DNA of 64,000 nucleotides from Octopus sinensis (GCF_006345805.1 NC_043003.1:87606001-87670000); one strand, 5' to 3'. Numbered from the stretch's first letter, positions 7,231-54,519 are shown. A program made the numbers and translations. The notes: generated from the letters alone by a model not told the origin.

Positions 7231-7390
7231 CGACGGGCTTCTTTCAGTTTCCGTCTACCAAATCCACTCACAAGGCTTTGGTCGGCTCGGGGCTATAGCA
7301 GAAGACACTTTCCCAAGATGCCACGCTGTGGGACTGAACCCGGAACCATGTGGTTGGTTAGCAAGCTACTTACCACACAGCCACTCCTCA
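6990..7390 (-). mobile_element. tRNA-derived SINE (family A), full length
   Basis: Reverse complement of 4000-4385. Confidence 0.9.
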
Positions 7391-7574
7391 TGTTTTTTCA
7401 TTGAAAATGTCCCCTCAAATATAATTTTAATTTTAGTCCTATCTTGTAATTGTTAAGATAATTATTCATTTCTATTCATTTATCCTCATTTCTCAATTCA
7501 CATTCATTCTTATCCCCATAAAACTTTGCTTCCTTAATTCTTCTCGTTCTTAGTTCCATATTTTGTCTTGCTTG

Positions 7575-10500
7575 CTCGCGGTGTGCCCGCCCTTTCCCAC
7601 CCACACCACCAATACCGGATACCTCTATCTTCGCACTGTTTACACCGGAAATCCCTTCTCCCTCCACCATTACCTGTGTCTATTCTTGCAACCACTCCTA
7701 CTCAACAGGCTATCCTCATATATTACCTGCACTTCTCTCTCTCCTAGGACGAATGCGGCCAGTGCAGCTGCTCATCAACCCACCCTCTTAACTAGTTACC
7801 TTATGTTTCGTTCTGTTTAGAAATCTGTCACTAACCCTACCAGTTATCTCTTCTCCCAGTTCCCCCTCCTCACTGGTGCTATCTTAAGTTTCTTCCTGTC
7901 TAGAAATTTGTCATCACTCCTACCAGTTATAGTTTCTCCTAACTCCCCCTCCTCACTGGTGCTGTCCCCTATATTACCTGCACTCTCTCTTTCTCCATCT
8001 CTCCCTCTCTCTCTCTCTCTACCTGCCCCCTCCCCATATTACCCGCACTCTTTTTTTCTCCATCTCTCCTTCTCCCTCTCTACCTGCCCCCTCTCTCTAC
8101 CTCTCTCTTCCAATATTTCTCTACTGTAACAAGCGCAAACAGGTTTGGCTATATTTCGTTCCATTTTCATTGTCTAGAAATATGCCAACAACTACCCATT
8201 TCCTTGGCCCTGGGAAGTAAATGTAAAAGCTATTCGGCTGTCCATGCATGCTTGTTCCTGTGTGTGTTTGCGCTTGTTTCCTCTCTCTCTCTGTCTGAAC
8301 CTTTCCCCACTGGTGGTACCCTCCATATACCTGCAATCCCCATCTACATGGACAAATGCGACAAGCTTTCAGCTGCCCCCTCCCTCCCCCCTGGAATATC
8401 CATATTTCTGCTACACCGCTAAAATCTACTTCATTCAATAACCTTAACGCTTATGCTTACAACGCTGCTAACACCGGCTCCTACACCCAGTAGGGGCAGC
8501 AATTTAACATGCTTGAACGCTTGAATGTTGTCAGGTCGGAAGTTTTCAGAGTTGGCACGGTCAATGTTGGCACACTGAAAAGTAAGTCTAGTGAGATTGT
8601 AGAGATGCTTGAAAGGAGACGGGTTGATGTATGCTGCATACAAGAGGTAAGATGAAGAGAGGAGCTTCAGCTAGGGTCCTCACAGGCAAGGCACATAGGT
8701 ATAAAGTCTTCTGGCAAGGTAACATGAACCCTTCATATGGTCAGAGATTTAGGGACATCCTATATGTCAGACATATAAGGTAGCTGGAAATTCTTACAGG
8801 ACAGCTTGCTGAGTGCTACAGACCAAGTCTGTAGATGGTGCAAAGTCCCTTCCAGACCTAGAGTTACATGGTGGTGGAATAGAATGATAGACAAAGCCGT
8901 TAGGGCAAAGAAACAGGCCTGGAAAGCCTGGAAGGGTGGGGGTAGCAGGGAATGGTACCAGGTAACCAGAAGGGAGGCTGGGCGGCAGGTATACATAGCC
9001 AAGAGTGAAGCAGAAGAGAAGTTTGCCAACGTCCAGAGACTTGAGGACCAAAGAACTTAGGTATTTCAGATTGCAAGACAGTGTGTGAGAGAAAATTGTG
9101 ATGTTACAAGAGAGAAATGTGCTCCGCATGGATGATGGGGCACTTGCTTTTAGTGATTCTGAAAAGAAAGAAGCTTGGAGAAGCCATTATGAAAGACTGC
9201 TGAATGTGGAGAATGAATGGGGGGAGGAGAGCCTTCCAAATGTTGACCCAGTAGAGGGACCAGCTATCTGAATAGACAGCTCCCTGGTTAATAAAGCGAT
9301 TAAGGCTATGAAGCCAGGAAATCACTGCTGAGATGCTTAAAACAGCTGGTTATGTGGGCTATGGGCTAGTCACCTGCATTGTAAACCGGGTAGTTCATGA
9401 TGGAGTCATACCCAATGACTGGCGTAGCAGCACCATAGTTAACTGCTACAAGGGTAAAGGTGATGCTCTAAATAGGAATAACTACAGGGGTATTAAACTG
9501 CTGGATCAGGTGATGAAGGTCATAGAGAGGGTCATAGTCCATCTCATTAGAGAGAGAGTCTGCTTAGATGAGATGCAGTTTGGTTTTTTTCCAAGTAGAA
9601 GCACCACTGATGCCATATTCCTGGTTCGACAATTGCAGGAGAAATACCTAGCTAAAGATAAACCCCTCTACATAGCTTTTGTGGACTTGGAGAATGCCTT
9701 TGACAGGGTCCCCCAATCCCTTATCTGGTGGGCAATGCAGAAACTGGAGATTGACGAATGGTTGATAAGGGCTGTACAGGCCTTATACAGAGAGGCCGTT
9801 TGTAAGGTTAGGATTGGCAACGAGTATAGTGAAGAATTCTGGGTAGAAGTATAGCTCCACCAAGGTCCAGCCCTTAGTCCCCTTTCATCATAGTCCTCCA
9901 GGCAATAACAGAGGAATTCAAAACGGGTTTCCCCTGGGAGCTCCTCTATGCTGATGACCTGGCCCTCATAGCAGAATCACTACCGGAACTAGAAAAGAAA
10001 TTTCGGGTGTGGAAACTAGGTTTAGAATCAAAGGGCCTTAGAGTAGCAAAGACCAAAGTTATAGTAAGCAGAAAGGCGAACTCATCACACACACCCTCGG
10101 GCAGGTGACCCTGCTCGATCTGTAGAAAAGGTGTAGGTAGAAACTCCATTAGATGTACCCAGTGTAAGCTATGGACGCATAAGAGGTGCAGCAATATCAA
10201 AGGAAAATTAACTGATAAGATAGCTTTCATGTGCGGCAGATGCACAGGGGCAATAAACACCACAGATACTCAGAAAACAGATTCCATCACACTCCAGGGG
10301 AAGAAACTAGAAATAGTTGATAGTTTCCGCTACCTAGGCGACCAAGTTAGTAGTGGAGGCTGATGCTCAGAGAGTGTCACCACTAGAATACGAATAACCG
10401 GGGCAAAGTTTAAAAAGCTCCTACCCCTACTGGTGACAAAGGGTCTCTTGCTCAGAGTGAAAGGTAGATTGTACAATGCATGTGTGCGAATTGCCATGCT

Positions 10501-11223
10501 TCACGGTAGTGAAACATGGGCTGTGACTGCAGAGGACATGTGTAGACTTGAAAGAAATGAAGTTAGCATGATCCGCTGGATGTGTAATGTCAGTGTGAAT
10601 GCACGACAGAGTGTAAGCGCCCTGAGAGAAATGCTGGACATAAGAAGCATCAGATGTGGTGTGCAAGAGAGATGTTTGCGCTGGTATGGTCATGTACTGC
10701 GGATGGATGAGGAGAGATGTGTGAAGAAGTGCCACTCCCAAACAGTTGAAGGTATCAGGGGAAGAGGTAAACCCAGGAAGACATGGGACGAGGTAGTCAA
10801 GCATGACCTCAGAATGTTGGTGGCACATGACCGGCTGTGCTTGAGACCTATTGAGTCAAGTACATCAACATCAAAATAAATTTCAAATGGAAATTGTAGT
10901 TGTGATACCTGTACCAGTGGCACTTAAAAAGCACCATCTGAACGTGGCCGATGCCAGCGCCACCTTGACTGGCTTCTGTGCCGGTGGCACGTAAAAAGCA
11001 CCAACCGATTGTGACCGCTGCCAGCCACCCTTGGCACCTGTGCTGGTGGCACGTAAAAAGCACCCACTACACTCACAGAATGGTTGGCGTTAAGAAGGGC
11101 ACCCAGCTGTAGAAACACTGCCAGATCAGACTGGAGCCTGGTGAAGCCTCCTGGCTTCCCAGATCCCAGTCGAACCGTCCAACCCGTACTAACACAGAAA
11201 ATGGACGTTAAACGATGATGATG
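7575..11223 (+). mobile_element. RTE-clade LINE (family 1), near full length, frameshifted and internally deleted
   Basis: CT-rich 5'UTR; APE start GTVNVGTL...VDVCCIQE (~8560-8650); RT motifs NYRGIKLL, QFGF, FVDLE.AFDRV, LLYADDL, YLG, LHGSETW, LRWYGHV; repetitive 3'UTR and (GAT)n tail. Confidence 0.92.
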
Positions 11224-11640
11224 TCCTATGAGAAAAAGTTACGATTGTACATAAAGTTTAGGTTGTTAGCTGCGTGAATTCAACATGTGATGTGGTAGAA
11301 TGAGTTTGTGTGAGTAGTTGTTGGTGAATGTACTTTGTTAAAGTTTATTCAGTTGTGATTTGTATTTTTGTATGAATCCCCTGCTTTTCATCAATTGAGA
11401 AAAATGTCTATAAGAAATGGGTGGTTTCTGCTAATCTTAATGTTGTTGATTTTTAGCTCTTGTCACTTTTAATTGAGTTGACTTATAAAAAGTAATCTAG
11501 ATGCAATTATTTTTTTCAGTCATAGGTTATTTAGAACTACATTACCCAATGTATCTTGCCTCTTTGTTTGTCAAGATAATGTGATGTAATTTGAGGAAAA
11601 TTTGGCCGCTATTTTAAAAAAGTCAAGTAACTACATATAC

Positions 11641-11801
11641 CAGGGATGGAGACAGGGAACCTTTTCAGTACCATAGCTGAATTGCAGATGCATAAGATGC
11701 AGTGGAGTGCATGTTCTGTGCTCAGAAATATAAATAATCTTTAATTTTACAAACTACAAAAAAATCTACAAAAAAATAAGTGCCTGATTTCCTTACCCCT
11801 G
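11641..11801. mobile_element. Possible hAT-type MITE
   Basis: CAGGG...CCCTG termini with an imperfect 8-bp flanking duplication (acatatac / acatagaa). Confidence 0.4.
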
Positions 11802-12043
11802 ACATAGAAGCTTCCTTGTTGGTTTTCCTCTATCTCTACTTGACATTACTAGCACAGAAGATGATTGACTGCATGTCACACTATATAAAACATGGGATTT
11901 AATAGAGTGGTGTTATGTTGATCCACCCCTATACTGTAATATACTGTAATATTGACTCATTCATCTCTATGATGTAATATAAATTCATTCACTCCTGTAC
12001 TTGGCTCTCTAAAAATTCATACACACACATGTTTTTCTTGCAG

Positions 12044-12153
12044 CTGTCAACTTGTCCAAGAGAAAGGCTAACAGCATCGATGTAGCCAGTCTCAAAAGAG
12101 GACCTACCAAAGCCATGGCCACCATTACCCCTTCATTTAGAACAAACCTATAA
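12044..12153 (+). CDS. Candidate terminal coding exon of an unidentified plus-strand gene: (A)VNLSKRKANSIDVASLKRGPTKAMATITPSFRTNL*
   Basis: Strong acceptor tgtttttcttgcag, open phase-1 frame to TAA, more GC-rich than flanks, AATAAA at 12204-12209. No homolog recognised. Confidence 0.4.
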
Positions 12154-22759: not shown

Positions 22760-22872
22760 GGGTGCTATTAAGTTAGACATGGCCTGGGCCAATAATGGCC
22801 GAAACCTATCAAAGTATCAAAGTATATATATATATATATATTATTATAATATATATATATATATATAATATA

Positions 22873-24137
22873 TTGGGTTGGCCAAAAAGTCCGTTGGTTT
22901 TTTTTTTAGGTGAAAATCAAAACAAAGTAAACAATTGTGAAAAATGTATTTAATCAATACAATAGTTACCATTTGCTTCTATAACCTTTTGCCACCTGTT
23001 GGGTAGATCTTTAATCCCCTGTTCAAAGAATTTAGGTTCTTTATTAGCAAAAAAGTTTCCAAGAAGTTTTTCACACACTTCATCAGAATTAAAATTTTTT
23101 CCATTCAATGAATTTTGCAGTGATCGAAACAGATGGAAATCTGATGGGGCCAGATCTGGAGAGTACGGAGGGTGAGGCAAAACTTCCCACTCAAACTGCT
23201 GCAACTTCTGCCGAGTAATCAAAGGAGTGTGTGGCCTTGCATTGTTATGGTGAAAAACGCCTTTGCGATTCACCAGTTCTGGCCGTTTTTGATGAAGAAC
23301 CATGTTTAATTTATCCAGTTGTGGCACAATAAACCTCTGAAATGATGGTTTTATTCAAGGGAAGAAGTTCCAAAAAAGACAACACCCTTCCAATCCCACC
23401 ATATCGATAACAGAACTTTCTTTGGGTGAAGACCTGCTTTGGGTGTTCGTTTTGGAGAATCCCCTGCTTTTTTCCATGATCTTCATTTCACACCATTGTA
23501 AACTACCCGCTTTTCATCTCCAGTAACAATTCTTCTCAAAAAGGGTTTGTTGTTTTCCCTTTTTAGTAATGAATCATAAATGGAAACCCTCTGGACAAGA
23601 TTTGCTTCTGTCAAACATCAAGTTTAGAAACGTAACCAAGTTTATGCAATTCATTTTCCACACTTGTTTTGGATATGTTAAGAATATCTGTGATTTGTCT
23701 GGTCATAAGACTGCAGTCTTGTTTGACTACAGCTCTCAGTTGGTCGATGTCAATTTTTTTTCGCCGGCCAGTGCAAGGTGCATCTCTTACTGAAAAATTC
23801 CCTGATTGAAATTGAGCAAACCATTTCTGGCACACCCATTCTGAAACAGCATTTCTCCATACACATTGCATAACTTTCGGCAAGTTTCTGTTGCTTTCTT
23901 TCTTTCTCTGAAGTAAAAAAGCATAAGATGCCGATAGTGCTCCGCCCGGTCTTCCATGCCTAGGCTCAAATGCAATCAAACAAGTTGCAATCTCTCTCCT
24001 TGAGGCTTGTTACACACTGATGCAACCTTGGTCGTTATACCGAATACAGTTTCTAAAGAAAAAGAATATCAGAACAGTGATTAGAAGACTGGACAGTTGA
24101 TACTAAAAAAAACGAACGGACTTTTTGGCCAACCCCA
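22873..24137 (-). mobile_element. Mariner transposon, defective (copy 1 of duplication)
   Basis: TA-flanked ~33-bp TIRs ttgggttggccaaaaagtccgtt. Transposase MEDRAEHYRHLMLFYF... and HPPYSPDLAPSDFHLF; the WVPHEL region is deleted. Confidence 0.93.
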
Positions 24138-24237
24138 TATATATCTAATTACACCTAACTTAATATATACCCCTATATAATATATATATATATACATACA
24201 TATACATATACACACACATACACACATATATATACAT

Positions 24238-27014
24238 ATCATCATCATCATCATCATCATCGTTTAACGTCCGTTTTCCGCGCTAGCACGGGTTGGACGG
24301 TTTGACCGGGGTCTGGGGAGCAGGGACTGCCCCAGGCTCCAGTCTGATCTGGCAGTTTTTTTCTACAGCTGGATGCCCTTCCTAACGCCAACCACTCCGC
24401 GAGTGTAGTGGGTGCTTTTTACGTGCCACCTGCACAGGTGCCAGAGGGGTCTGGCATCGGCCACGATCGGTTATTGCCTTTTTTCGTTGCATTGCGGCAG
24501 GGGGGGAGGGTTCCGGCAGAGAGGAGATAGGGAGAGAGAGTGGTGGGGGGTGCATGTAATATAGGGGAGCACCAGTGGGGAAGGTTTGGGGTAAGAGAAA
24601 CGATGACAGGTAGGGTTGGTGGCAGGTTCTAGACAGAATGAAAAGTAGGAAGTAAAACGTAGTATCAAGAGTGGGGGAGGGGGCTGGAAGGAGATAGCCG
24701 GTTGAGCAGTGACACGAGGCAGTGACACATTTCAAAACAGGAGGAACATAAGATAACAGGTTAAGTTGGGACGTTTGATGAGCTGCAGCGCTAGCTGCTT
24801 ATGTCCAGGGGAGAGAGGCAGGGGTAAAATACATAATGAGAAAGTATATTGAGGAGGAGGGGGAGGAGGAACAGACACACGTAGTGGTGGCGGTGGTAGA
24901 GGGGATATCCGGTGAGGATGGTGTTAAACAGAGTGTTCTCCGTTATGGGTGGTGGGGGTGGGAGGGCAGGCGAACCGCGAACGAATGGCGGGCTGCGAAG
25001 ATTTTGATTGGGGACAGTAGACTTAAAACAATCGGGTTTGAAGAAATGAACAGAGTAACGAACAAATTAACTTGGTACCGAGGGGATAAACAAATTAAAG
25101 TTTATTTTAAGAGCAAGCAGAATTAGTGAATAGATTCGAACATTTAAGGGTTAGCAGCAAATGTATGTGTGTAGTACAAGAGTCAGGAAGAGATGAAATG
25201 AGAATTCTTAGCTTGCTTGCTATGATCATCGCTGTGTGGTCAAGGAGGGGTGAATGAAAAATAAGCACACGAGGTGATTATTTATATAGGTTCACCGGAA
25301 GTGGGTTGGAAAGACGGAAGTTTTGATTGAAAGTAATGGCGGAGGACGAACGAAATATCTTCATACCGAGGCATTTAAAAAAAATTTTTAAGAATTTAAA
25401 CCGCGAACGAATGGCGGGCTGCGAAGATTTTGATTGGGGACAGTAGACTTAAAACAATCGGGGTTTGAATAAATGAACAGAGTAACGAACAAATTAACTT
25501 GGTACCGAGGGGATAAACAAATTAAAGGGTTATATTTTAAGAACAAGCAGAATTAGTGAATAGATTCGAACATTAAGGGTTAGCAGCAAATGTAGTGTGT
25601 AGTACAAGAGTCAGGAAGAGATGAAATGAGAATTCTTAGCTTGCTTGCTATGATCATCGCTGTGTGGTCAAGAAGGGGTGAATGAAAGAGAAGCACACGA
25701 GGTGATTATTTATATAGGTTCACCGGAAGTGGGTTGGAAAGACGGAAGTTTTGATTGAAAGTAATGGCGGAGGACGAACGAAATATCTTCATACCGAGGC
25801 ATTTTAAAAAAATTTAAGAATTTAAACCGCGAATGAATGGCGGGCTGCGAAGATTTTGATTGGGGACAGTAGACTTAAAACAATCGGGGTTTGAAGAAAT
25901 GAACAGAGTAACGAACAAATTAACTTGGTACCGAGGGGATAAAAAATTAAAGGGTTAAGGGTTATATTTTAAGAGCAAGCAGAATTAGTGAATAGATTCG
26001 AACATTTAAGGGTTAGCAGCAAATGTATGTGGTAGTACAAGAGTCAGGAAGAGATGAAATGAGAATTCTTAGCTTGCTTGCTATGATCATCGCTGTGTGG
26101 TCAAGAAGGGGTGAATGAAAAATAAGCACACGAGGTGATTATTTATATAGGTTCACCGGAAGTGGTTTGGAAAGACGGAAGTTTTGATTGAAAGTAATGG
26201 CGGAGGGCGAGGACGAACGAAATATCTTCATACCGAGGCATTTAAAAAAAATTTTTAAGAATTTAAACCGCGAACGAATGGCGGGCTGCGAAGATTTTGA
26301 TTGGGGACAGTAGACTTAAAACAATCGGGGTTTGAAGAAATGAACACAGTAGTAACGAACAAATTAACTTCGGTACCGAGGGGATAAAAAATTAAAGGGT
26401 TATATTTTAAGAGCAAGCAGAATTAGTGAATAGATTCGAACATTAAGGGTTAGAGCAGCAAATGTATGTGTGTAGTACAAGAGTCAGGAAGAGATGAAAT
26501 GAGAATTAGCTTGCTTGCTATGATCATCGCTGTTGTGGTCAAGAAGGGGTGAATGAAAGATAAGCACACGAGGTGATTATTTATATAGGTTCACCGGAAG
26601 TGGTTTGGAAAGACGACGGAAGTTTTGATTGAAAGTAATGGCGGAGGACGAACGAAATATCTTCATACGAGGCATTAAAAAAAATTTTTAAGAATTTAAA
26701 CCGCGAACGAATGGCGGGCTGCGAAGATTTTGATTGGGGACAGTAGACTTAAAACAATCGGGGTTTGAAGAAAGAAATGAACAGAGTAACGAACAAATTA
26801 ATTTGGTACCGAGGGGATAAACAAATTAAAGGGTTATATTTTAAGAGCAAGCAGAATTAGTGAATAGATTCGAACATTTAAGGGTAGCAGCAAATGTATG
26901 TGTGTAGTACAAGAGTCAGGAAGAGATGAAATGAGAATTCTTAGCTTGCTTGCTATGATCATCGCTGTGTGGTCACGAAGGGGTGAATGAAAGATAAGCA
27001 CACGAGGTGATTAT
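24238..27014 (-). mobile_element. Non-autonomous RTE family-1 derivative: monomer array + 5'UTR tether + 3'UTR/(GAT)n tail (copy 1)
   Basis: 24471-24972 aligns by eye to the RTE 5'UTR at ~7575-8010. 24238-24470 is the RTE 3'UTR end and tail. No ORF between them. Confidence 0.8.
24973..27014 (-). repeat. Tandem array of ~427-bp monomers (4 full + 1 partial)
   Basis: Unit starts (aaccgcgaa) at 24973, 25399, 25825, 26266, 26699. Confidence 0.97.
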
Positions 27015-27058
27015 TATATATATATAATATATATATATATATATAATATATATATATA

Positions 27059-28325
27059 TTGGGTTGGCCAAAAAGTCCGTTGGTTTTTTTTTTAGGTGAA
27101 AATCAAAACAAAGTAAACAATTGTGAAAAATGTATTTAATCAATACAATAGTTACCATTTGCTTCTATAACCTTTTGCCACCTGTTGGGTAGATCTTTAA
27201 TCCCCTGTTCAAAGAATTTAGGTTCTTTATTAGCAAAAAAGTTTCCAAGAAAGTTTTCACAACTTCATCAGAATTAAAATTTTTTCCATTCAATGAATTT
27301 TGCAGTGATCGAAACAGATGGAAATCTGATGGGGCCAGATCTGGAGAGTACGGAGGGTGAGGCAAAACTTCCCACTCAAACTGCTGCAACTTCTGCCGAG
27401 TAATCAAAGGAGTGTGTGGCCTTGCATTGTTATGGTGAAAAACGCCTTTGCGATTCACCAGTTCTGGCCGTTTTTGATGAAGAACCATGTTTAATTTATC
27501 CAGTTGTGCACAATAAACCTCTGAAATGATGGTTTTATTCAAGGGAAGAAGTTCCAAAAAAGACAACACCCTTCCAATCCCACCATATCGATAACAGAAC
27601 TTTCTTTGGGTGAAGACCTGCTTTGGGTGTTCGTTTTGGAGAATCCCCTGCTTTTTTCCATGATCTTCATTTCACACCATTGTAAACTACCCGCTTTTCA
27701 TCTCCAGTAACAATTCTTCTCAAAAAGGGTTTGTTGTTTTCCCTTTTTAGTAATGAATCATAAATGGAAACCCTCTGGACAAGATTTGCTTCTGTCAAAC
27801 ATCAAGTTTAGAAACGTAACCAAGTTTATATGCAATTCCATTTTCCACACTTGTTTTGGATATGTTAAGAATATCTGTGATTTGTCTGGTCATAAGACTG
27901 CAGTCTTGTTTGACTACAGCTCTCAGTTGGTCGATGTCAATTTTTTTTCGCCGGCCAGTGCAAGGTGCATCTCTTACTGAAAAATTCCCTGATTGAAATT
28001 GAGCAAACCATTTCTGGCACACCCATTCTGAAACAGCATTTCTCCATACACATTGCATAACTTTCGGCAAGTTTCTGTTGCTTTCTTTCTTTCTCTGAAG
28101 TAAAAAAGCATAAGATGCCGATAGTGCTCCGCCCGGTCTTCCATGCCTAGGCTCAAATGCAATCAAACAAGTTGCAATCTCTCTCCTTTGAGGCTTGTTA
28201 CACACTGATGCAACCTTGGTCGTTATACCGAATACAGTTTCTAAAGAAAAAGAATATCAGAACAGTGATTAGAAGACTGGACAGTTGATACTAAAAAAAA
28301 CGAACGGACTTTTTGGCCAACCCAA
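27059..28325 (-). mobile_element. Mariner transposon, defective (copy 2 of duplication)
   Basis: Near-identical to 22873-24137, offset 4186 bp; differences are mostly 1-2-nt indels. Confidence 0.93.
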
Positions 28326-29161
28326 TATATATCTAATTACACCTAACTTAATATATACCCCTATATAAATATATATATATATACATACATATACATATAC
28401 ACACACATACACATATATATACATATCATCATCATCATCATCATCATCGTTTAACGTCCGTTTTCCGCGCTAGCACGGGTTGGACGGTTTGACCGGGGTC
28501 TGGGGAGCAGGGACTGCCCCAGGCTCCAGTCTGATCTGGCAGTTTTTTTCTACAGCTGGATGCCCTTCCTAACGCCAACCACTCCGCGAGTGTAGTGGGT
28601 GCTTTTTACGTGCCACCTGCACAGTGCCAGAGGGGTCTGGCATCGGCCACGATCGTTGTTATTGCCTTTTTTCGTTGCATTGCGGCAGGGGGGGAGGGTT
28701 CCGGCAGAGAGGAGATAGGGAGAGAGAGTGGTGGGGGGTGCATGTAATATAGGGGAGCACCAGTGGGGAAGGTTTGGGGTAAAGAGAAACGATGACAGGT
28801 AGGGTTGGTGGCAGGTTCTAGACAGAATGAAAAGTAGGAAGTAAAACGTAGGATATCAAGAGTGGGGGAGGGGGCTGGAAGGAGATAGCCGGTTGAGGCA
28901 GTGACACGAGGCAGTGACACATTTCAAAACAGGAGGAACATAAGATAACAGGTTAAGTGGGACGTTTGATGAGCTGCAGCGCTAGCTGCTTATGTCCAGG
29001 GGGAGAGAGGCAGGGGTAAAATACATAATGAGAAAGTATATTGAGGAGGAGGGGGAGGAGGAACAGACACACGTAGTGGTGGCGGTGGTAGAGGGGATAT
29101 CCGGTGAGGATGGTGTAACAGAGTGTTCTCCGTATGGGTGGTGGGGGTGGGAGGGCAGGCG

Positions 29162-32028
29162 AACCGCGAACGAATGGCGGGCTGCGAAGATTTTGATTGG
29201 GGACAGTAGACTTAAAACAATCGGGGTTTGAAGAAATGAACAGAGTAACGAACAAATTAACTTGGTACCGAGGGGATAAACAAATTAAAGGGTTATATTT
29301 TAAGAGCAAGCAGAATAGTGAATAGATTCGAACATTAAGGGTTAGCAGCAAATGTATGTGTGTAGTACAAGAGTCAGGAAGAGATGAAATGAGAATTCTT
29401 AGCTTGCTTGCTATGATCATCGCTGTGTGGTCAAGGAGGGGTGAATGAAAAATAGCACACGAGGTGATTATTTATATAGGTTCACCGGAAGTGGGTTGGA
29501 AAGACGGAAGTTTTGATTGAAAGTAATGGCGGAGGACGAACGAAATATCTTCATACCGAGGCATTTAAAAAAAATTTTTAAGAATTTAAACCGCGAACGA
29601 ATGGCGGGCTGCGAAGATTTTGATTGGGGACAGTAGACTTAAAACAATCGGGGTTTGAATAAATGAACAGAGTAACGAACAAATTAACTTGGTACCGAGG
29701 GGATAAACAAATTAAAGGGTTATATTTTAAGAACAAGCAGAATTAGTGAATAGATTCGAACATTTAAGGGTTAGCAGCAAATGTATGTGTGTAGTACAAG
29801 AGTCAGGAAGAGATGAAATGAGAATTCTTAGCTTGCTTGCTATGATCATCGCTGTGTGGTCAAGAAGGGGTGAATGAAAGATAAGCACACGAGGTGATTA
29901 TTTATATAGGTTCACCGGAAGTGGGTTGAAAGACGGAAGTTTTGATTGAAGTAATGGCGGAGGACGAACGAAATATCTTCATACCGAGGCATTTTAAAAA
30001 AATTTTTAAGAATTTAAACCGCGAATGAATGGCGGGCTGCGAAGATTTTGATTGGGGACAGTAGACTTAAAACAATCGGGGTTTGAAGAAATGAACAGAG
30101 TAACGAACAATTAACTTGGTACCGAGGGGATAAACAAATTAAAGGGTTATATTTTAAGAGCAAGCAGAATTAGTGAATAGATTCGAACATTTAAGGGTTA
30201 GCAGCAAATGTATGTGTAGTACAAGAGTCAGGAAGAGATGAAATGAGAATTCTTAGCTTGCTTGCTATGATCATCGCTGTGTGGTCAAGAAGGGGTGAAT
30301 GAAAGATAGCACACGAGGTGATTATTTATATAGGTTCACCGGAAGTGGTTTGGAAAGACGGATTTTTGATTGAAAGTAATGGCGGAGGACGAACGAAATA
30401 TCTTCATACCGAGGCATTTAAAAAAAATTTTTAAGAATTTTAACCGCGAACGAATGGCGGGCTGCGAAGATTTTGATTGGGGACAGTAGACTTAAAACAA
30501 TCGGGGTTTGAAGAAATGAACAGAGTAACGAACAAATTAACTTGGTACCGAGGGGATAAACAAATTAAAGGGTTATATTTTAAGAGCAAGCAGAATTAGT
30601 GAATAGATTCGAACATTTAAGGGTTAGCAGCAAATGTATGTGTGTAGTACAAGAGTCAGGAAGAGATGAAATGAGAATTCTTAGCTTGCTTGCTATGATC
30701 ATCGCTGTGTGGTCAAGAAGGGGTGAATGAAAGATAAGCACACGAGGTGATTATTTATATAGGTTCACCGGAAGTGGTTTGGAAAGACGGAAGTTTTGAT
30801 TGAAAGTAATGGCGGAGGACGAACGAAATATCTTCATACCGAGGCATTTAAAAAAAATTTTTAAGAATTTAAACCGCGAACGAATGGCGGGCTGCGAAGA
30901 TTTTGATTGGGGACAGTAGACTTAAAACAATCGGGGTTTGAAGAAATGAACAGAGTAACGAACAAATTAACTTGGTACCGAGGGGATAAACAAATTAAAG
31001 GGTTATATTTTAAGAGCAAGCAGAATTAGTGAATAGATTCGAACATTTAAGGGTTAGCAGCAAATGTATGTGTGTAGTACAAGAGTCAGGAAGAGATGAA
31101 ATGAGAATTCTTAGCTTGCTTGCTATGATCATCGCTGTGTGGTCACGAAGGGTGAAGAAAGATAAGCACACGAGGTGATTATTTATATAGGTTCACCGAA
31201 GTGGGTTGGAAAGACGGAAGTTTTGATTGAAGTAATGGCGGAGGACGAACGAAATATCTTCATACCGAGGCATTTTAAAAAAATTTTTAAGAATTGAAAC
31301 TGCGAACGAATGGCGGGCTGCGAAGATTTTGATTGGGGACAGTAGACTTAAAACATCGGGTTTGAAGAAATGAACAGAGTAACGACAAATTAACTTGGTA
31401 CTGAGGGGATAAACAAATTAAGGGTTATATTTTAGAGCAAGCAGAATTAGTGAATAGATTCGAACATTAAGGGTTAGCAGCAAATGTATGTGTGTAGTAC
31501 AAGAGTCAGGAAGAGATGAATGAGAATTCTTAGCTTGCTTGCTATGATCATCGCTGTGTGGACAAGAAGGGGTGAATGAAAGATAAGCACACGAGGTGAT
31601 TATTTATATAGGTTCACCGGAAGTGGTTTGGAAAGACGGAAGTTTTGATTGAAAGTAATGGCGGAGGACGAACGAAATATCTTCAACCGAGGCATTTAAA
31701 AAAAATTTTTAAGAATTTAAACCGCGAACGAATGGCGGGCTGCGAAGATTTTGATTGGGGACAGTAGACTTAAAACAATCGGGGTTTGAAGAAATGAACA
31801 GAGTAACGAACAAATTAACTTGGTACCGAGGGGATAAACAAATTAAAGGGTTATATTTTAAGAGCAAGCAGAATTAGTGAATAGATTCGAACATTTAAGG
31901 GTTAGCAGCAAATGTATGTGTGTAGTACAAGAGTCAGGAAGAGATGAAATGAGAATTCTTAGCTTGCTTGCTATGATCATCGCTGTGTGGTCAAGAAGGG
32001 GTGAATGAAAGATAAGCACACGAGGTGA

Positions 32029-32038
<10 letters not shown>
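29162..32038 (-). repeat. Tandem array of ~427-bp monomers (6 full + 1 partial)
   Basis: Unit starts at 29162, 29589, 30017, 30442, 30872, 31298, 31720. Confidence 0.97.
30725..30815 (-). promoter_or_regulatory. Predicted Pol II core promoter, repeated in each monomer (example copy)
   Basis: Minus strand: YY1-like CCGCCATT (30808-15), ETS-type ACTTCCGT (30787-94) and ACTTCCGG (30768-75), TATAAA starting 30759, Inr TCATTC with +1 A at 30728, i.e. TATA at -31. Confidence 0.65.
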
Positions 32039-32065
<27 letters not shown>

Positions 32066-32224
32066 CATATACACACACATACATACACATTCACACACAT
32101 ATACATACACATCTGCATAATCATCACAATATAACTAATATAATATATTATAGTAATAATCGTTCACTCTAAATAATTACAGATAATTCAGTAGGGGTAA
32201 ATTTAATAGTATGTTCTATTTGTA

Positions 32225-32818
32225 TTTGGAGAAAGTACACCCAATTTTATGAAGACAGGAAACATTACATTCCTTAAAATTGTTAATAAGCAGAATTTTA
32301 GCCCTAATTAGAAAGAAAATTTCATTAATGCATAATAAACATTTTTTATTTTTATTGTTGTATGCTGGTGCTGATATTATTTTCCATTATAAATTATAAT
32401 TGATTTTCTTATCTTTAAGTTCCCATATATAGGTACTTAACCCTGTAGAATTTCTCCTATTTCTGTTACTAAAGGTGTAGCTGTGATAATTAAATCTGTT
32501 TCATATTGTTTTTCATTGCACTGATATAAACTTTACTATCATATTGTGTACTTACTATACATTGATATACTACCTCCTTTCTAATGCAACCATCATTAAA
32601 TACACAATTATTACTTATTCTACAATTACACTTTCTACATTGTTGTACAGGGTTTATGTTATTGGGGTTAACAGTCAATATATCATTACTATTTCTCTGG
32701 TTATTGTCTATCTGAATAATATTATTAATGCTTATACTATTATGATCATTACTATTAGTATTATTCTTGTTATTTCGACTTGCATTGTTACTGTTGTTGT
32801 TATTATTATTATTATTAC
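32225..32818 (-). mobile_element. Penelope-like element C-terminal part (Asn-rich linker + GIY-YIG endonuclease)
   Basis: CNCR...C...GC....VVYQ..V......K.YI, then STGLSTYIWELKD and C.LC.NE motifs. Confidence 0.85.
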
Positions 32819-35800
32819 TTTTTTTTTCTTCTTTCAAATTTGCTTCCATTTCTTGCCGAGTGTCTTCCCGACTCCTAGGGCAAAGAAACTCATAGTATAC
32901 AATGGTAGGCCATTAAACCAAATTCAGTAGTTCGTTCATTTTTTTTTTTTTTTTTAAGTTAAATTAAAATACATGAGCAGCAACAGTTCTCACATCGACA
33001 ATGCTCTTCTCAATACGTGTGATGTACCAGTTAAGACAATCTTTTGCACTTCTTGCAGGGATGGTAAGCCAGGGATCATTCTCATATAATTTTCGGGTCC
33101 CTTCTTGATCATTCCTAGTGCTCCTACGATCACTGGTATTGTAACCGCCTTGAGATGCCACATTTTCTCAATTTCAATGAGTAGGTCTTTATATTTTCTG
33201 AGCTTGTCAAACTCTTTCGCTGAGATATTATGATCACAGGGGATGCTCATGTCAATCAATAAGCAAACCGTATTGTTTTGGTCTTTCACAACAATATCTG
33301 GTTTATTGGCCTTGATGGTTCGGTCTGTATGTACTGGAAAGTCCCACAGAATGGTTACATTTTCTCCTTCAGTTACAGCCTCAGGGTGGTGATTATACCA
33401 CTTGTCGGCAGGTTTGATATTGTAATGCCGACTAATTAGCCAGTGGAGATATTGGCCAACTCTGTCATGTCTTAATTTATACTCCACTGGTGCTAAGACT
33501 TTACATCCAGAGATTAGATGGTCCACTGTTTCAATCATGTCGTTGCAGAATCGGCATTTTGGGTCTGCTCCATTTTTCATCACATTGGCCTGGTAGTTCC
33601 GGGTTAATAGGCTTTGATCTTGAGCAGCCAGGATGAAACCTTCGCTCTCTGCTTTTAGCCCTGAGCTCCGTAACCACTGATGGGTTTGCTTCTGGTCAAC
33701 ATCAGCTTGTTTGCTGCGGGTCACATATTTGCCGTGCAGAGGTTTTTCCTCCCACCTATCAGCCAATTGCTCGTGCGCGTTTTTCATTGCTATCATTTTC
33801 ACCTTCTTTGCAACAATAGTTGCCGTACTTCCCTCGGGTTGTTCAGTTTGGGTATCCTGCACGAGATCAGTAGCAAATTTTTTGCTTTCCTTTATTATAG
33901 AATGAAGCTTCTTTCGTCTCTCGTGATTTTCCACGAGCTTTAGCATCCAGTCATTCGATATTTCGAGATATTTGGCCAGTCCAATTGTGGTTGTTTTGTA
34001 AGCTAGTTCAATTGGATCAGGCCTCGACCTCCTTGGGCTCTGGGAAGGTAAAGGCGATCTACGTCTGCCTTTGGGTGGTGCATCCTATTACAACTCAGCA
34101 GCTTGCGTATTTTTCTATCTATATTCTTTACTTCACTCATATTCCAGTTCAACACATTGTAGCTATAAGTAACAACTGGAACTGCTAAGGAATTTATAGC
34201 TAACACCTTGTTACGTGCATTTAGTTCAGATTTCAGGACTGCACGAACTCTCCTATAACATTCCTTCCTGATTTTCTCTTTCATGCTTGCATGCTGAATA
34301 CCAGAGCCTTCATTTATCCCTAAATATTTGTATGTTTGTTCTTGCTCAAGCTCTCTTATGACTGTGTCAACATCTAACACGACTGAATTTGTGGTCTTCA
34401 CTTTCCCTTTCTGGAAAGTGGCCTTGGCACACTTCTCAAGTCCAAACTCCATCCCGATGTCATCGCTGAATGCTTTCACGGTGCGCAATAGGCCTTCAAG
34501 TTCATTATTGTCTTTACCATAAAGTTTTAAGTCATCATATAAAATAGATGGCTTATTTTTTTATTGGCAATTTTATACCCATACACTGTTCTGTTTAATT
34601 CACTTGTAAGGGGTATTAGGGCTACGCAGAATATTAAAGGTGAAAGTGAGTCACCTTGAAAAATTCCACAGTTGATGTTTATATTTTCTGAGGCAAGTAC
34701 TCCATTAGAGTGGTATAATTGGAGATTCGTATTCCACAACGACATATTGTGCTTCAGGAAGTTTGAAATCACAGGGGAAATTTTGAAGATGTCCAGCGAT
34801 CTCAAGATCCATGGATGCGGTATACTGTCGAAGGCCTTTTTATAGTCAATCCATGCGGTGCTGAGATTTCTGCACTTGTTGTGACAGTTCTCAAGGATCA
34901 TACGATTGATTAGCAGTTGATCTTTGCATCCGTAAGAGCCTCGGCGGCACCCTTTTTGTTCAATGGGGAAAATATCGTTCTTCTCCATGAATGCATATGT
35001 TTTCTCCGCCAGGATAGATGTTAGGATTTTATACGTGGTGGATAGACAGGTTATAGGCCGATAGTTTTTTGGAAGGTTGGTTTCGTTATTCTTGGGAGTA
35101 GGTAAGTAATGCCACTTGCTAACCATTCAGGTGTTTTCTTTGGGTCTCTCATAATTCCATTGAGCAGCTGAACTAGCTTACCGTGTGCGCATGGGAGCGA
35201 TGCGAGCCAGAAATTCGGCACCTTATCTTTACCGGGGGATTTCCAATTATGGGCCTTCGTGAGTGCCTTTCTTAGGTCTGCTATTGTGATGTCTTCCCAT
35301 GCTTGTTGTAAATTTTGGTAGGATCCTTCAGTTTGTATAATCCAGTCTGCATTTATGTTGTACATCTTCTTGTCACTCCAAATCCTTTTCCAAAAGTTCT
35401 TTAACGGTTACTTTCTCCTTCCCTATTTCTCTGTAGAATTTTTTGGCATTGGATGTGAACAGCTTATTTTGCTTATAAAACTTGTTTCTCTTCTCAAATC
35501 TTCGTATTCTTTGGGCTTTTGCTTGGACTTTTTGTTTCAGCGTTTCTTTTATTGATATCAGTTCTTCTCTTGGTGAGGATCCAAATTTTCTCTTCATCTT
35601 TCTTCCTGTTCTGGATCTTACATCATTTCCACATATTAGTTCATTTAATATTGATATTTCCCCTCTCATAAATTCAATCTCTTTTTCAATTTTACTCCAG
35701 GTTTGATTTCTTCCCAGGTTTGGTTTTCTTTGTTTTTTCGGGGGCATACAGCTGGTTTCAATTGCCCTAGCAGAAGCATAAATAATTTCATTTAACTCAG

Positions 35801-36752
35801 TAAAATCAGGTTTTAATTCTCGTATTATTTCATTTGTTACATAGTTGCCAATTTGGATTTGTTTTTTATTTTGGTTTGTATTTGAGAGTTTATGAAGTGG
35901 TTCTCTATCATTCATACTTGTATGTCTTACAACTTCAAGCGTATTCAGGATTTTCTGCCTCATTTCTGCCATAGACTCTCTGTGTTCTTCAGCAAATGCA
36001 AGATCTTCAGTTACTGTTGTTTTTTTTTCGTTTTCCTGGCTATCTTTAACAGGTACAATAGAATTTCTTGTATCTTCAGGCCTTTGTGTACTTTGGTCAG
36101 ATGGCAGTCTTTCAATTAAGCCTCGTGGCGGGCTTACTGTTCATCTGATTCTTCATTTCCTTTGTGTCTTATATTATGTCATTTTCCGTTGCGTGCTTGA
36201 TCGCGCTTATTTCACTGTCTGTGAGTCTGTTATTTCTAAGGATATCCCTCCTCACATTTGCTAATTTGTTCTCATCCAAATAGGGCCTACTGTCTTGATT
36301 CCGTGTTCTCCATATACTGTAAGAGTTTGCGGTGTGTCTCTCTTGAGATGGCCTACCTAATGCATAGTAATAAGCGTATATTACTTCTTCATACTTTTCT
36401 TGGGTCCATTTGTTCCGCTTACATTTTTCTTTCTGTGGTGGTTGTGGTGGTGAACTTGGAGGGCTCCAGTTGGGGGATTTCCCGTTCAAGTGACCATCCA
36501 TGTCCGTATTCGGAGAAGAGTTTGTGCCAGTTGATGACTTTTCGATCCCAGGCTGGCTCTTCCCTGGGGGACGCGCTTCCAGATTAACCATAGGACAAGT
36601 GATTTGGTATACTGATTTAGTTTTCCTTTTAGTTTCCAAAAACATTTTGGTGGCTACGATAATGTTATCATTTTTAGCTTTGATTGGCTCGTGGGGAGAC
36701 GGCCATCATTGCCGTTACAATTATAATCGTACCATTATAGCAGCGTAGTCAG
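32819..36752 (-). mobile_element. R4/Dong-clade (restriction-like endonuclease) non-LTR retrotransposon, near full length
   Basis: N-terminal KW..E...Y.YY region; RT (YRPITCL, EQKGC, AWIDYKKAFDS, GIFQGDSLSPL, YKYLG); CCHC CRFC...ETVDHLISGC; REL motif KPDIVV...LIDMSIP...KLRKY. TAA repeats at both ends. Confidence 0.9.
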
Positions 36753-44244: not shown

Positions 44245-44595
44245 ACAGAAGCCAGCTCCGCCTCGACTGGCTTCTGTGTCGGTGGCACATAAAAAGCACC
44301 ATCCGAATCGTGGCCGAAGCCAGTGCCGCTTCGACTGGCTTCCGTGCCGGTGGCACATAAAATGCACCAATCCGACCGTGGCCGATGCCAGCCTCGCCTG
44401 GCACCAGTGCAGGTGGCACGTAAAAAGCACCCATTACATTCACAGAGTGGTTGGCGTTAGGAAGGGCATCCAGCTGTAGAAACATTGCCAGATAAGACCG
44501 GAGCCTGGTGCAGCCTTCTGGCTTCCCAGATCCCCGGTCGAACCGTCCAACCCATACTAGCATGGAGAACGGACGTTAAACGATGATGATGATGA
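44245..44595 (+). mobile_element. RTE family-1 3'UTR fragment
   Basis: Tandem gccggtggcac.taaaaagcacc units and (GAT)n tail. Confidence 0.85.
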
Positions 44596-54415: not shown

Positions 54416-54519
54416 CATTCAAATTATATTGAGATACATGAAATATCCCCCTCCCCATGCTTTTCACACTAAACTCTTGTATAATCAGAACTTACACCAT
54501 CTGAAAAGTATTTATCATT

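Follow-up and report, generated by a model that had tools for sequence, protein, structure and literature searches.

A composite element in the 64-kb stretch of DNA analysed here (the window) joins a tandem array of promoter-like monomers to a derivative of an RTE-type retrotransposon. The composite is real and is organized like the monomer-bearing L1 elements of rodents, while the promoter role of its monomers is predicted. LINEs face a general problem, in that the RNA does not include a promoter lying upstream of it, which is hence lost at every jump. The known answers to this problem are internal promoters, co-transcription with ribozyme processing, and the tandem promoter monomers of rodent L1. 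The reading that we put first, tentatively, is that of an L1-monomer-like composite, in which an ORF-less RTE derivative was fused to an array of predicted promoter units, is transcribed by read-through and is mobilised in trans. Two copies of the composite are present, both on the minus strand, and consist from 5' to 3' of the following parts:

29170..32039, minus strand: monomer array 1, 6.7 copies (TRF, phasing, alignment, sequence)
28691..29169, minus strand: tether of copy 1, non-repeated and C/T-rich (BLAST, alignment, composition)
28449..28690, minus strand: linker and RTE 3'UTR of copy 1 (BLAST; also matches L001)
28425..28448, minus strand: (GAT)8 tail of copy 1 (sequence)
24981..27022, minus strand: monomer array 2, 4.7 copies (TRF, shared variants, distance matrix)
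24503..24980, minus strand: tether of copy 2 (BLAST, alignment)
24262..24502, minus strand: linker and RTE 3'UTR of copy 2 (BLAST)
24238..24261, minus strand: (GAT)8 tail of copy 2 (sequence)

The two arrays consist of a head-to-tail tandem unit of ~430 bp, delimited by TRF at 29162-32039 (period 430, 6.7 copies, 97% matches) and 24973-27022 (period 433, 4.7 copies, 94% matches). Phasing of both arrays yields 12 monomers of 421-438 bp each, with a consensus of 430 bp; the copy numbers of the original prediction hold, but its monomer length of 427 bp has to be changed to ~430 bp. The layout is that of L1, with sense-oriented monomers at the 5' end and a truncated last monomer that abuts a unique tether. 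In each array this final monomer is cut off at 300 bp (phasing, alignment), in array 1 at ...TTCGCGGTT. At the opposite end, the 5'-most copy of array 1 starts at the TATA box and blends into (TA)n, so that the array begins 25-31 nt before the predicted +1, unlike the remnant expected from an Inr-initiated transcript. The array is found on one side of the RTE piece only (sequence), which argues against an element that simply landed inside a satellite.

The region 24238-32038 had been described as a single element, and resolves into two paralogous copies with a broken mariner between them. The mariner belongs to the duplicated unit, which has (TA)n tracts at its boundaries:

27061..28325, minus strand: broken mariner between the composites (Pfam HTH_48 and Transposase_1; stops, frameshifts)
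22875..24136, minus strand: second mariner copy, downstream (in the minus sense) of composite copy 2 (alignment)
32030..32071, no strand: (TA)n tract at the upstream boundary of the duplication (TRF, alignment)
27015-27059 and 22829-22873, no strand: equivalent (TA)n tracts (TRF, alignment)

The mariner copy at 27061..28325 is 98.8% identical to 22829-24263, and arrays 1 and 2 are paralogous monomer by monomer (shared variants, distance matrix). The two composites are a local tandem duplication of ~4.2-5 kb. Because the mariner, the flanks and monomer-specific variants are common to both, the copies are not independent, and the 64-kb window holds one independent monomer-RTE junction. The values 4.7 and 6.7 do not attest a varying monomer number among insertions, since both go back to this one local duplication. 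The composite is flanked by TA/TG microsatellite; the similarity between the two flanks is no greater than their similarity to other microsatellites, and no target-site duplication is definable within them. It is unlikely, in our estimate, that the duplicate and the difference between 6.7 and 4.7 units were produced by assembly, from haplotypes placed side by side or from collapsed reads, an explanation that is compatible with the other readings and concerns copy number only. Boundaries in (TA)n tracts and copies of such high identity (98.8%) fit an artefact, as do the 59 indel columns versus 30 substitution columns among the monomers, since indels that lie mostly in homopolymers are typical of noisy long-read assembly. 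However, real-looking substitutions and two whole monomers separate the copies, and unequal exchange between (TA)n tracts fits the structure equally well.

An RTE-like relative of the remaining parts lies in the same window:

7576..11223, plus strand: LINE A, a defective RTE-like LINE (BLAST, Pfam, nhmmer, alignment)

LINE A (~3.65 kb) encodes RVT_1 (1.3e-14, Pfam) and a PHD-like finger after the RT. Its ORF has many stops, its endonuclease is mostly deleted with the N-terminal ~35 aa left (...NVGTLKSKSSEIVEMLERRRVDVCCIQEV), and its 3'UTR carries 67-bp repeats. The 1,539 homologues found come without clade names, and "RTE-like" is a provisional label. A microsatellite tail is a noted feature of RTE elements (PMC9115989), and LINE A, itself a short element, the composite and L001 all end in one, (GAT)3, (GAT)8 and (GAT)7, respectively. 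The tethers (~480 bp) match the 5'UTR segment 7576-8035 of LINE A, aligned in reverse orientation (8035-7576), with 68-69% identity over ~500 bp (BLAST; 1e-39 for 28691-29169, with 68.7% over 501 bp, and 3e-35 for 24503-24980), and the predicted homology of the tether to an RTE 5'UTR is thereby borne out (BLAST, alignment). The same is true of the predicted 3'UTR and (GAT)n end: 28435-28675 and 24248-24487 are 83-90% identical to RTE 3' ends at 11223, 44595, 40749, 50910, and 52980 and to shorter pieces (BLAST), and the (GAT)8 can be read in the sequence. The 3' end of the composite is a genuine LINE 3' end, because in LINE A and in L001, an independent relative, the RT ORF is likewise trailed by this 3'UTR and (GAT)n. 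The tether leads over a short linker directly into this 3'UTR and not into LINE ORFs, as it would in an autonomous element, and, the mariner set aside, neither RT nor endonuclease was detected across 24238-32039. Since it lacks coding capacity and has its 3' end in common with a partner LINE, the composite has the makeup of a LINE-dependent non-autonomous element.

The junction between monomer and LINE 5' sequence bears on how the two were joined. Both have TCGCGGT at this point, a 7-nt microhomology of the sort that template switching or end joining leaves. This fits the preferred composite and also speaks for a one-off chimera, a serious possibility if not the outcome that we would expect, in which a single event linked a 430-bp tandem repeat, possibly transcribed, to an ORF-less RTE derivative and the product never propagated as a family. 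Such a chimera could have come about when the RT switched templates to a transcript of the repeat, by 5' transduction from a source copy situated behind an array of this kind, or by insertion at the array edge; the promoter-like units might then be active, yet would not constitute an evolved retroelement promoter. The single independent locus in 64 kb is in line with this; the window contains nine other RTE 3' ends, none with tether or monomers. No monomers were found by nhmmer upstream of LINE A, the only near-full-length LINE of its family in the window. An apparent weak monomer similarity at LINE A was at noise level. Further points for a chimera are the 5' end of the array, which lies off the predicted start site, and the failure to retrieve any other composite copy from the collections searched, a weak point as these probably do not contain the source genome. 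On the other hand, a propagating family would be expected to have an array that lies in sense and abuts exactly, a G-poor strand bias common to its parts and an intact, retrotransposition-competent 3' end, all of which are seen here, and copy number is not measurable from one 64-kb window. The strand bias is seen in a sense-strand G content of 11% in monomer, tether and LINE A 5'UTR alike, compared to 28% in the ORF and 18% in the window. Among the RTE relatives, L003, L004, and L007 are 5'-truncated. L006, from another organism (Exo_endo_phos and RVT_1), is the only one that keeps most of the endonuclease, in a ~0.9-kb ORF starting near the domain N-terminus, and has no 5' monomer array.

The case for the preferred L1-like composite depends on the content of the monomer, each of which is plausibly a complete Pol II promoter aimed into the element. 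Nearly every monomer carries two copies of CCGCCATT, two of ACTTCCG, one TATAAA and one TCATTC with A+1 31 nt downstream, arranged as in this example on the minus strand:

30725..30897, minus strand: example promoter-like module (motif scan, sequence, CpG o/e 2.5-2.8)
30890 and 30815, minus strand: starts of CCGCCATT (motif scan)
30794 and 30775, minus strand: ACTTCCG (motif scan)
30759-30754, minus strand: TATAAA (motif scan)
30730-30725, minus strand: TCATTC, A+1 at 30728 (motif scan)

Relative to +1 the motifs are at -162, -87, -66, -47, -31, and +1. The motif scan recovers the predicted set of two YY1-like and two ETS-type motifs, TATAAA and Inr, together with the predicted 31-nt spacing, measured from the T of TATAAA at 30759 to A+1 at 30728. 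The two YY1-like cores, at -162 and -87, read GCCAT on the sense strand, an orientation opposite to that in L1, and fall short of the full YY1 consensus; the two ETS-type sites are 19 bp apart, and the initiator follows the consensus TCAKTY. There are 22 occurrences of CCGCCATT and 18 of ACTTCCG[GT], all on the minus strand within the arrays, and neither motif occurs on either strand in the remaining 56 kb of the window. Of 11 monomers, 8 have an intact TATAAA-N25-TCATTC. A small CpG island coincides with the motif cluster: CpG o/e is 1.30 for the monomer and peaks at 2.5-2.8 over monomer positions 276-400, just 5' of the TATA box, compared to 0.61 in the tether, 0.34 in LINE A and 0.37 elsewhere in the window. 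Neither AATAAA nor ATTAAA is found on the sense strand of monomer, tether or 3'UTR. The reading as a complete Pol II promoter gains from the CpG peak and from this lack of a sense poly(A) signal.

The motifs might still be functionless matches in an ordinary satellite or TE-derived repeat that merely adjoins RTE debris in a TE-dense region. When 20,000 random 430-mers of equal composition were drawn from a first-order Markov model, 0.5% contained a TATA-Inr pair, 0.3% at least two ACTTCCG and 0.3% at least two CCGCCAT, rates that are optimistic because the motifs were selected after inspecting the sequence. This post hoc choice favors the satellite, and so does the fact that the monomers are mutual copies with an effective sample size of one. 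The motif module is no better conserved among monomers than its surroundings (12 substitutions in 176 nt within versus 18 in 254 nt outside), and CpG richness could stem from youth. Nevertheless, we regard functionless matches as quite improbable, since the ETS pair, the GCCAT pair and the canonically spaced TATA-Inr are each expected in only ~0.3-0.5% of random sequences, the motif order is that of a real promoter, and CpG o/e is highest over the motif cluster, with lower values in the tether and 3'UTR that belong to this insertion.

Small-RNA genes are often tandemly repeated. An array of such genes unrelated to the RTE piece, either of Pol III type 3 ending at a T8 run or producing a small Pol II RNA, would account for the tandem repetition, for the TATA at -31 and for the T8 run at monomer position 326, which lies on the sense strand ~300 nt past the predicted start. 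We consider this highly improbable. Rfam gave no match at E<=1 in 28400-30100 and, at gathering score, none across the window; no tRNA was found, and the folding of the predicted transcript of 309 nt is no more stable than that of shuffled sequences (z = -0.01). Moreover, the ETS- and YY1-type motifs and the TCAKTY initiator are Pol II features, and a search with the monomer ORFs yielded no protein homologues. A hammerhead retrozyme or an HDV-like 5' ribozyme, as in RTE/R2-type LINEs, was also considered and rejected, as no Rfam ribozyme matched; near the 5' end of LINE A (7300-8600) Rfam gave nothing at E<=5.

The preferred L1-monomer-like composite would have arisen from one ancestral locus, in which ~480 bp of RTE 5'UTR, a short linker, ~240 bp of RTE 3'UTR and (GAT)n formed a derivative whose 5' end became joined to a row of 430-bp units oriented like itself. 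Transcription starting in any monomer would read through the downstream monomers and the tether to the RTE 3' end; such read-through is inferred because the strand is devoid of AATAAA and ATTAAA. An RTE reverse transcriptase supplied in trans would recognize this 3' end, and a new copy would keep all monomers 3' of the start site. At least one complete promoter would be retained unless the start was in the last complete monomer, which is the logic of mouse L1. Later, exchange between the (TA)n tracts on either side would have given rise to the tandem duplication of the locus and the neighboring mariner, after which the arrays diverged to 6.7 and 4.7 units or came out so in the assembly.

Composite non-coding elements that depend on LINEs are known. 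SVA/LAVA-type retrotransposons are composite and non-coding, have a variable tandem-repeat block, are transcribed by Pol II and depend on a LINE in trans. The composite is like them in being non-coding and in its tandem-repeat block, but SVA has repeat units of 35-50 bp, L1 as partner and a poly(A) tail, and its repeat block is not known to be a set of complete promoters. The Bov-A2/Bov-tA SINEs are mobilised by BovB, a LINE of the RTE clade. They are likewise non-autonomous, have their 3' end in common with such a LINE and carry duplicated upstream units, which are however two short LINE-derived units (~115 bp) without a TATA/Inr/ETS module.

A close counterpart is the 5'UTR of mouse L1, in which the monomer/tether design keeps the promoter even if 5' units are lost (PMC7778262, PMC5381506). 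Mouse and rat L1 have a sense tandem 5' array, a truncated last monomer and an unrepeated tether (PMC7778262, PMC5381506), CpG-rich monomers with transcription signals including a YY1-type core, and few units per array, with a mean of ~3 in young mouse L1. The monomer measures ~200 bp in mouse L1 and ~650 bp in rat L1, compared to 430 bp here. In contrast to these elements, the partner here is RTE-like, and the composite has no ORF and is known from a single independent locus. L1 promoters act TATA-less with broad start sites, whereas the monomer has an explicit TATA and TCAKTY. The L1 5' YY1 sites read ATGGCG in sense near the start (PMC5381506), while the monomer cores, GCCAT, are reversed; the predicted likeness to the YY1 monomers of L1 thus extends to the monomer/tether layout but not to core orientation. 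Lizard L1, with the 5' terminus GACTTCCGGTG-N8-ATGGCG, offers a further parallel, as its conserved 5'-terminal motif ACTTCCGGTG (PMC5381506) is identical to the ETS decamer of the monomer, and in the promoter region of lizard L1, as in the predicted one here, a GCCAT/ATGGC core accompanies it. There the motifs are unrepeated and lie at the extreme 5' end, downstream of the start (PMC5381506), whereas the ETS and GCCAT motifs described here are tandemly repeated, 47-162 nt upstream of a TATA-directed start.

Taken further, the findings might reflect an RTE-type lineage that evolved the solution of mouse L1 independently, as a non-autonomous family that is mobile, may have autonomous relatives and carries at its 5' end a variable array of complete TATA/Inr/ETS promoters, which we think doubtful at present. 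If true, the monomer design would evolve convergently, here in an RTE-type element with a TATA/Inr/ETS promoter; it would have no precedent outside L1, nor would there be an earlier example with a TATA-containing promoter, and each retrotransposed copy would retain an upstream-type promoter. The 7-nt junction microhomology would make it a simple system for how LINEs acquire new 5' ends, and dispersed units could serve as strong portable promoters in a TE-rich genome. A single local chimera, by contrast, would be an ordinary by-product of TE-dense DNA. In octopus, the RTE LINE RTE-2_OV has UTRs of ~600 nt and a microsatellite 3' end (PMC9115989), the latter as in the composite. No 5' tandem monomers are described for it, and it differs from LINE A in having an N-terminal C2H2 finger in place of the PHD-like finger after the RT (PMC9115989).

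The composite is an ORF-less element on the minus strand, in which an array of monomers of about 430 bp is followed by a tether (a non-repeated stretch of about 480 bp), an RTE 3'UTR and a (GAT)n tail. The original prediction had described this order, with the tether resembling the 5'UTR of LINE A, a defective RTE-like LINE at 7576-11223 (plus strand), and Tandem Repeats Finder, BLAST and alignment bear it out. The parts of the two copies and the (TA)n tracts around them are as follows.

Features of the composite and its surroundings
24973-27022, minus strand, monomer array: period 433, 4.7 copies, 94% matches (Tandem Repeats Finder)
29162-32039, minus strand, monomer array: period 430, 6.7 copies, 97% matches (Tandem Repeats Finder)
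29169 to 28691, minus strand, tether: non-repeated, C/T-rich
24980 to 24503, minus strand, tether: non-repeated, C/T-rich
32030-32071, (TA)n tract
27015-27059, (TA)n tract
22829-22873, (TA)n tract

The arrays hold 12 monomers of 421-438 bp, with a consensus of 430 bp (minus strand, phased on a conserved anchor). In both copies the 5'-most monomer opens as ...(TA)n-AATAATCACC, so that it begins with the TATA box rather than the initiator, 25-31 nt ahead of the predicted +1. The final monomer is cut after 300 bp (ending ...GCCCGCCATTCGTTCGCGGTT) and passes without spacer into the tether, which begins CGCCTGCCCTCC... Over about 500 bp the tethers are 68-69% identical to 7576-8035 on the plus strand (BLAST, E 1e-39 and 3e-35; alignment). 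A short linker leads to an RTE 3' part of about 240 bp, 83-90% identical to the 3' ends at 11223, 44595, 40749, 50910 and 52980 and to shorter pieces, and (GAT)8 terminates each copy. LINE A carries a 3'UTR and (GAT)n tail of the same kind, as does L001, an independent relative on a metagenome scaffold (73% DNA identity to LINE A; same 3'UTR and (GAT)7 directly behind the RT ORF), and for this reason the 3' module of the composite is a true LINE 3' end; the tether is a true LINE 5'UTR homologue.

The two copies are non-independent insertions: one locus has been tandemly duplicated. On the minus strand the order (TA)n, array, tether, RTE 3' end, (GAT)8, microsatellite, 36 bp, mariner, (TA)n is repeated as a whole series. 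A broken mariner (HTH_48 and Transposase_1) occupies the stretch between the arrays at 27061-28325, and 27015-28450 recurs at 22829-24263 with 98.8% identity. Monomer-specific variants also match by position, with one substitution between the monomers at 29899 and 25707, one between 29469 and 25279, and four between 30323 and 26140. The simplest origin of the duplication is an exchange between (TA)n tracts; alternatively it is an assembly artefact. The aligned monomers have 59 columns with indels, mostly in homopolymers, vs. 30 with substitutions, an excess that suggests errors of a noisy long-read assembly. The range of 4.7 to 6.7 monomers in the original prediction is uninformative on variation in monomer number across retrotransposition events, because the common variants and the mariner mark both copies as a single duplicated locus; for monomer number among independent insertions, one independent locus is seen in the window. 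No target site duplication of the composite is definable, its flanks being TA/TG microsatellite with a mutual score of 41.5, compared to up to 47.5 with other microsatellites in the window. The mariner copies (22875-24136 and 27061-28325, minus strand) have terminal repeats ...GGTTGGCCAAAAAGTCCGTTCG, lie within (TA)n and were copied with the composite.

LINE A encodes RVT_1 (1.3e-14) and a PHD-like finger (domain search); of an APE-type endonuclease it keeps no more than the N-terminal ~35 residues, and it has numerous stops. Its reverse transcriptase has more than 1,500 relatives, with the RVT_1 plus PHD architecture seen among the matches listed, and the named relatives are marine invertebrates (hydroid, clam, amphioxus). 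With nhmmer --max, no monomer was found upstream of LINE A, the sole near-full-length LINE of its family within the window, nor elsewhere in the window outside the arrays. A Smith-Waterman score of 51 between 7416-7585 and monomer positions 173-348 was reached by 2 of 300 shuffles and is regarded as noise, as the best unrelated windows score 50-52 in gappy low-complexity alignments. A candidate target site duplication of LINE A (GTCCTAT, 7 bp, at ~7437 and after the tail at ~11225), implying a 5' end near 7444, is too short to be trusted. Of four RTE relatives in other organisms, retrieved along with flanking DNA, three (on contigs L003, L004 and L007) are 5'-truncated; the fourth (on L006) keeps most of the endonuclease in a ~0.9-kb ORF from near the domain N-terminus, and a tandem array is absent upstream of it.

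The monomer carries an ordered set of promoter-like motifs. CCGCCATT (n = 22) and ACTTCCG[GT] (n = 18) are confined to the minus strand of the arrays and absent from both strands of the other 56 kb. With the A of TCATTC as +1, the order is GCCAT at -162 and -87, ETS at -66 and -47, TATA at -31 and initiator at +1. The predicted TATA-initiator spacing of 31 nt was recovered exactly (T of TATAAA at 30759, A of TCATTC at 30728), and 8 of 11 monomers keep TATAAA-N25-TCATTC unbroken, the others being off by 1-nt indels. Among 20,000 first-order Markov 430-mers with the composition of the monomer, the TATA-initiator pair (either strand) occurred in 0.5%, at least two ACTTCCG (one strand) in 0.3% and at least two CCGCCAT in 0.3%, figures that are optimistic since the motifs were picked after inspection and the monomers are copies of one sequence. 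Taken jointly, the motif pattern is, to judge from these sequences, unlike the output of random AT-rich DNA.

The CpG observed/expected ratio is 1.30 in the monomer, compared to 0.37 in the window, 0.34 in LINE A and 0.49 in the mariner, and within the same insertion it is lower in the tether (0.61) and 3'UTR (0.84). It peaks at 2.5-2.8 at monomer positions 276-400 (sliding 100-nt window), coinciding with the GCCAT/ETS cluster that precedes the TATA box. G makes up 11% of the sense strand in the monomer, the tether and the LINE A 5'UTR alike, vs. 28% in the ORF and 18% in the rest of the window; an unrelated satellite would have no cause to have this G-poor bias in common, in the same orientation, with a tether and a LINE 5'UTR. 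Substitutions in the motif module are not rarer than in other parts of the monomer, and selective constraint is undetectable among the monomers.

The reading of the GCCAT motifs as YY1-like holds for their cores, which are present, but fails for the rest of the consensus, which is missing, and for the orientation, which is the reverse of that found for YY1 at the 5' ends of L1. GABP typically targets pairs of ETS sites spaced by one to two helical turns. The lizard L1 5' start is GACTTCCGGTG-N8-ATGGCG (PMC5381506), so LINE promoters that combine the same ETS decamer and a GCCAT/ATGGC core are already on record. The apparent resemblance to GABP-type and lizard L1 promoter motifs is a lead, not a test.

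A very unlikely alternative is that each monomer is a Pol III small-RNA unit, with which a TATA box at about -30 and a T8 run ~300 nt downstream are compatible. Against it, the upstream motifs point to Pol II, and shuffled sequences fold just as well as the predicted 309-nt RNA (z = -0.01), which led us to reject a structured RNA product of the monomer. Hammerhead repeats and HDV-like 5' ribozymes occur in repeat families and some LINEs; in the monomer, the tether and the LINE 5' end, neither Rfam matches, even at permissive thresholds, nor tRNAs (ARAGORN) were found. Neither AATAAA nor ATTAAA occurs in sense orientation in monomer, tether or 3'UTR, and Pol II could thus traverse monomer after monomer into the RTE part.

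The Pol II reading would make the composite an ORF-less RTE derivative that retains both ends of its parent LINE and whose 5' end became fused to a sense-oriented array, each unit of which could plausibly serve as a complete Pol II promoter. Whichever unit transcription began in, the RNA would run on through all later units and the tether to the RTE 3' end, on which the reverse transcriptase of the family could act in trans, and a new copy would keep a complete promoter if transcription starts upstream of the last complete monomer; the locus would afterwards have been duplicated locally. From the anatomy, a single promoter-bearing unit of transcription and mobilisation is quite conceivable, at a little under even chances. 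In favour of a promoter are the CpG peak, the sense strand free of poly(A) signals, the shared G-poor bias, the junction microhomology and the lizard L1 motifs; the interpretation is limited by the single independent locus, the bare 5' side of LINE A, the array start at the TATA box, the reversed GCCAT cores, the indefinable target site duplication and the unconstrained motif module. An RTE piece inserted in the middle of a satellite is excluded, as monomers flank just one of its sides. TCGCGGT stands at the junction in both the monomer and LINE A (alignment); template switching and end joining leave microhomologies of this sort behind. Under the main rival reading, the locus is a chimera or juxtaposition that arose once, through a template switch, 5' transduction or insertion at the edge of an array; we consider it possible if rather doubtful, and with one locus it is inseparable from a propagating family. 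The stronger claim, that such a family evolved the tandem-promoter design, appears unlikely at present. At this stage the composite amounts to one well-documented locus together with a hypothesis that can be tested.

The design and rationale of monomers and tether in mouse L1 are summarised in PMC7778262, and the composite is proposed to work like the monomer/tether 5'UTR of mouse and rat L1. It is not a member of the strict L1 design, since an ORF after the tether is absent and the YY1 sites differ in orientation. With SVA-type composites it shares its non-coding nature, a repeat block and a presumed dependence on a LINE. The octopus element RTE-2_OV has UTRs of ~600 nt and a microsatellite 3' end, with no 5' repeats described (PMC9115989). 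Our literature search found no monomeric promoters described for RTE elements and no paper containing sequence strings from the locus. If confirmed genome-wide, the composite would represent monomeric LINE promoters outside L1, made from a TATA/Inr/ETS promoter.

Searches beyond the window covered collections from which the source genome is almost certainly absent. Among 5.8 billion proteins the ORF across the junction had 0 matches, and nine consensus monomer ORFs and the window's own ORFs were likewise unrecorded; a full HMMER scan of the antisense junction ORF gave low-complexity matches only. Pattern searches at the DNA level, with the monomer and with the conserved RTE tail, gave 0 matches in JGI metagenomes, GTDB genomes and IMG/VR.

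Several further repeats were observed. The RTE family of LINE A tends toward duplication of UTR segments. Its 3'UTR holds a variable tandem repeat of 64-69-bp units containing GGTGGCACGTAAAAAGCACC, with 2.5, 2.8 and 4.0 copies at 10907-11064, 44248-44431 and 50480-50737, several in L001 (~1650-1900) and about 1.3 in the composite, while the LINE A 5'UTR (7800-8093) has 83-bp x2 and 65-bp x2 repeats, and the composite tether two units equivalent to the 83-bp type. A PHD-like zinc finger, CSICRKGVGRNSIRCTQCKLWTHKRCS, follows the RT palm motif (YADD) in LINE A (9900-10300) and at 53682-54467 (minus strand). Just upstream of LINE A lies a SINE-like sequence (7231-7400) with a tRNA-B-box-like segment GGGACTGAACCCGGAACC; this sequence and the RTE tail presumably resemble abundant octopus repeats. 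On L006, an unrelated contig that looks bivalve-like by eye, a 461-bp x2.7 tandem repeat (10620-12120) has TATATAAATAATCC and CAAGATGGCCGCCATG in every unit and lies between inverted GCTCACCTGAG...CTCAGGTGAGC ends, ~1.7 kb downstream of the RT ORF of the RTE relative; it looks like a MITE with a putative internal promoter-like repeat. On L007 a 157-bp x2.3 repeat (572-931) with a palindromic YY1-like pair CAAGATGGTCGTCGGACGCCATCTTG lies ~2.5 kb upstream of the truncated RTE relative. Another LINE, with long ORFs and a poly(A) end near 32945, occupies 32753-36650 (minus strand) and is 95.9% identical to L002 (1,983 bp, ENA metagenome assembly), a record whose name suggests a sewage sample from Bologna (Italy), so that the source species or a close relative sheds DNA into that sample. 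The window overall has a very high density of microsatellites and transposable elements, with nine RTE 3' ends per 64 kb, and is strongly depleted in CpG.
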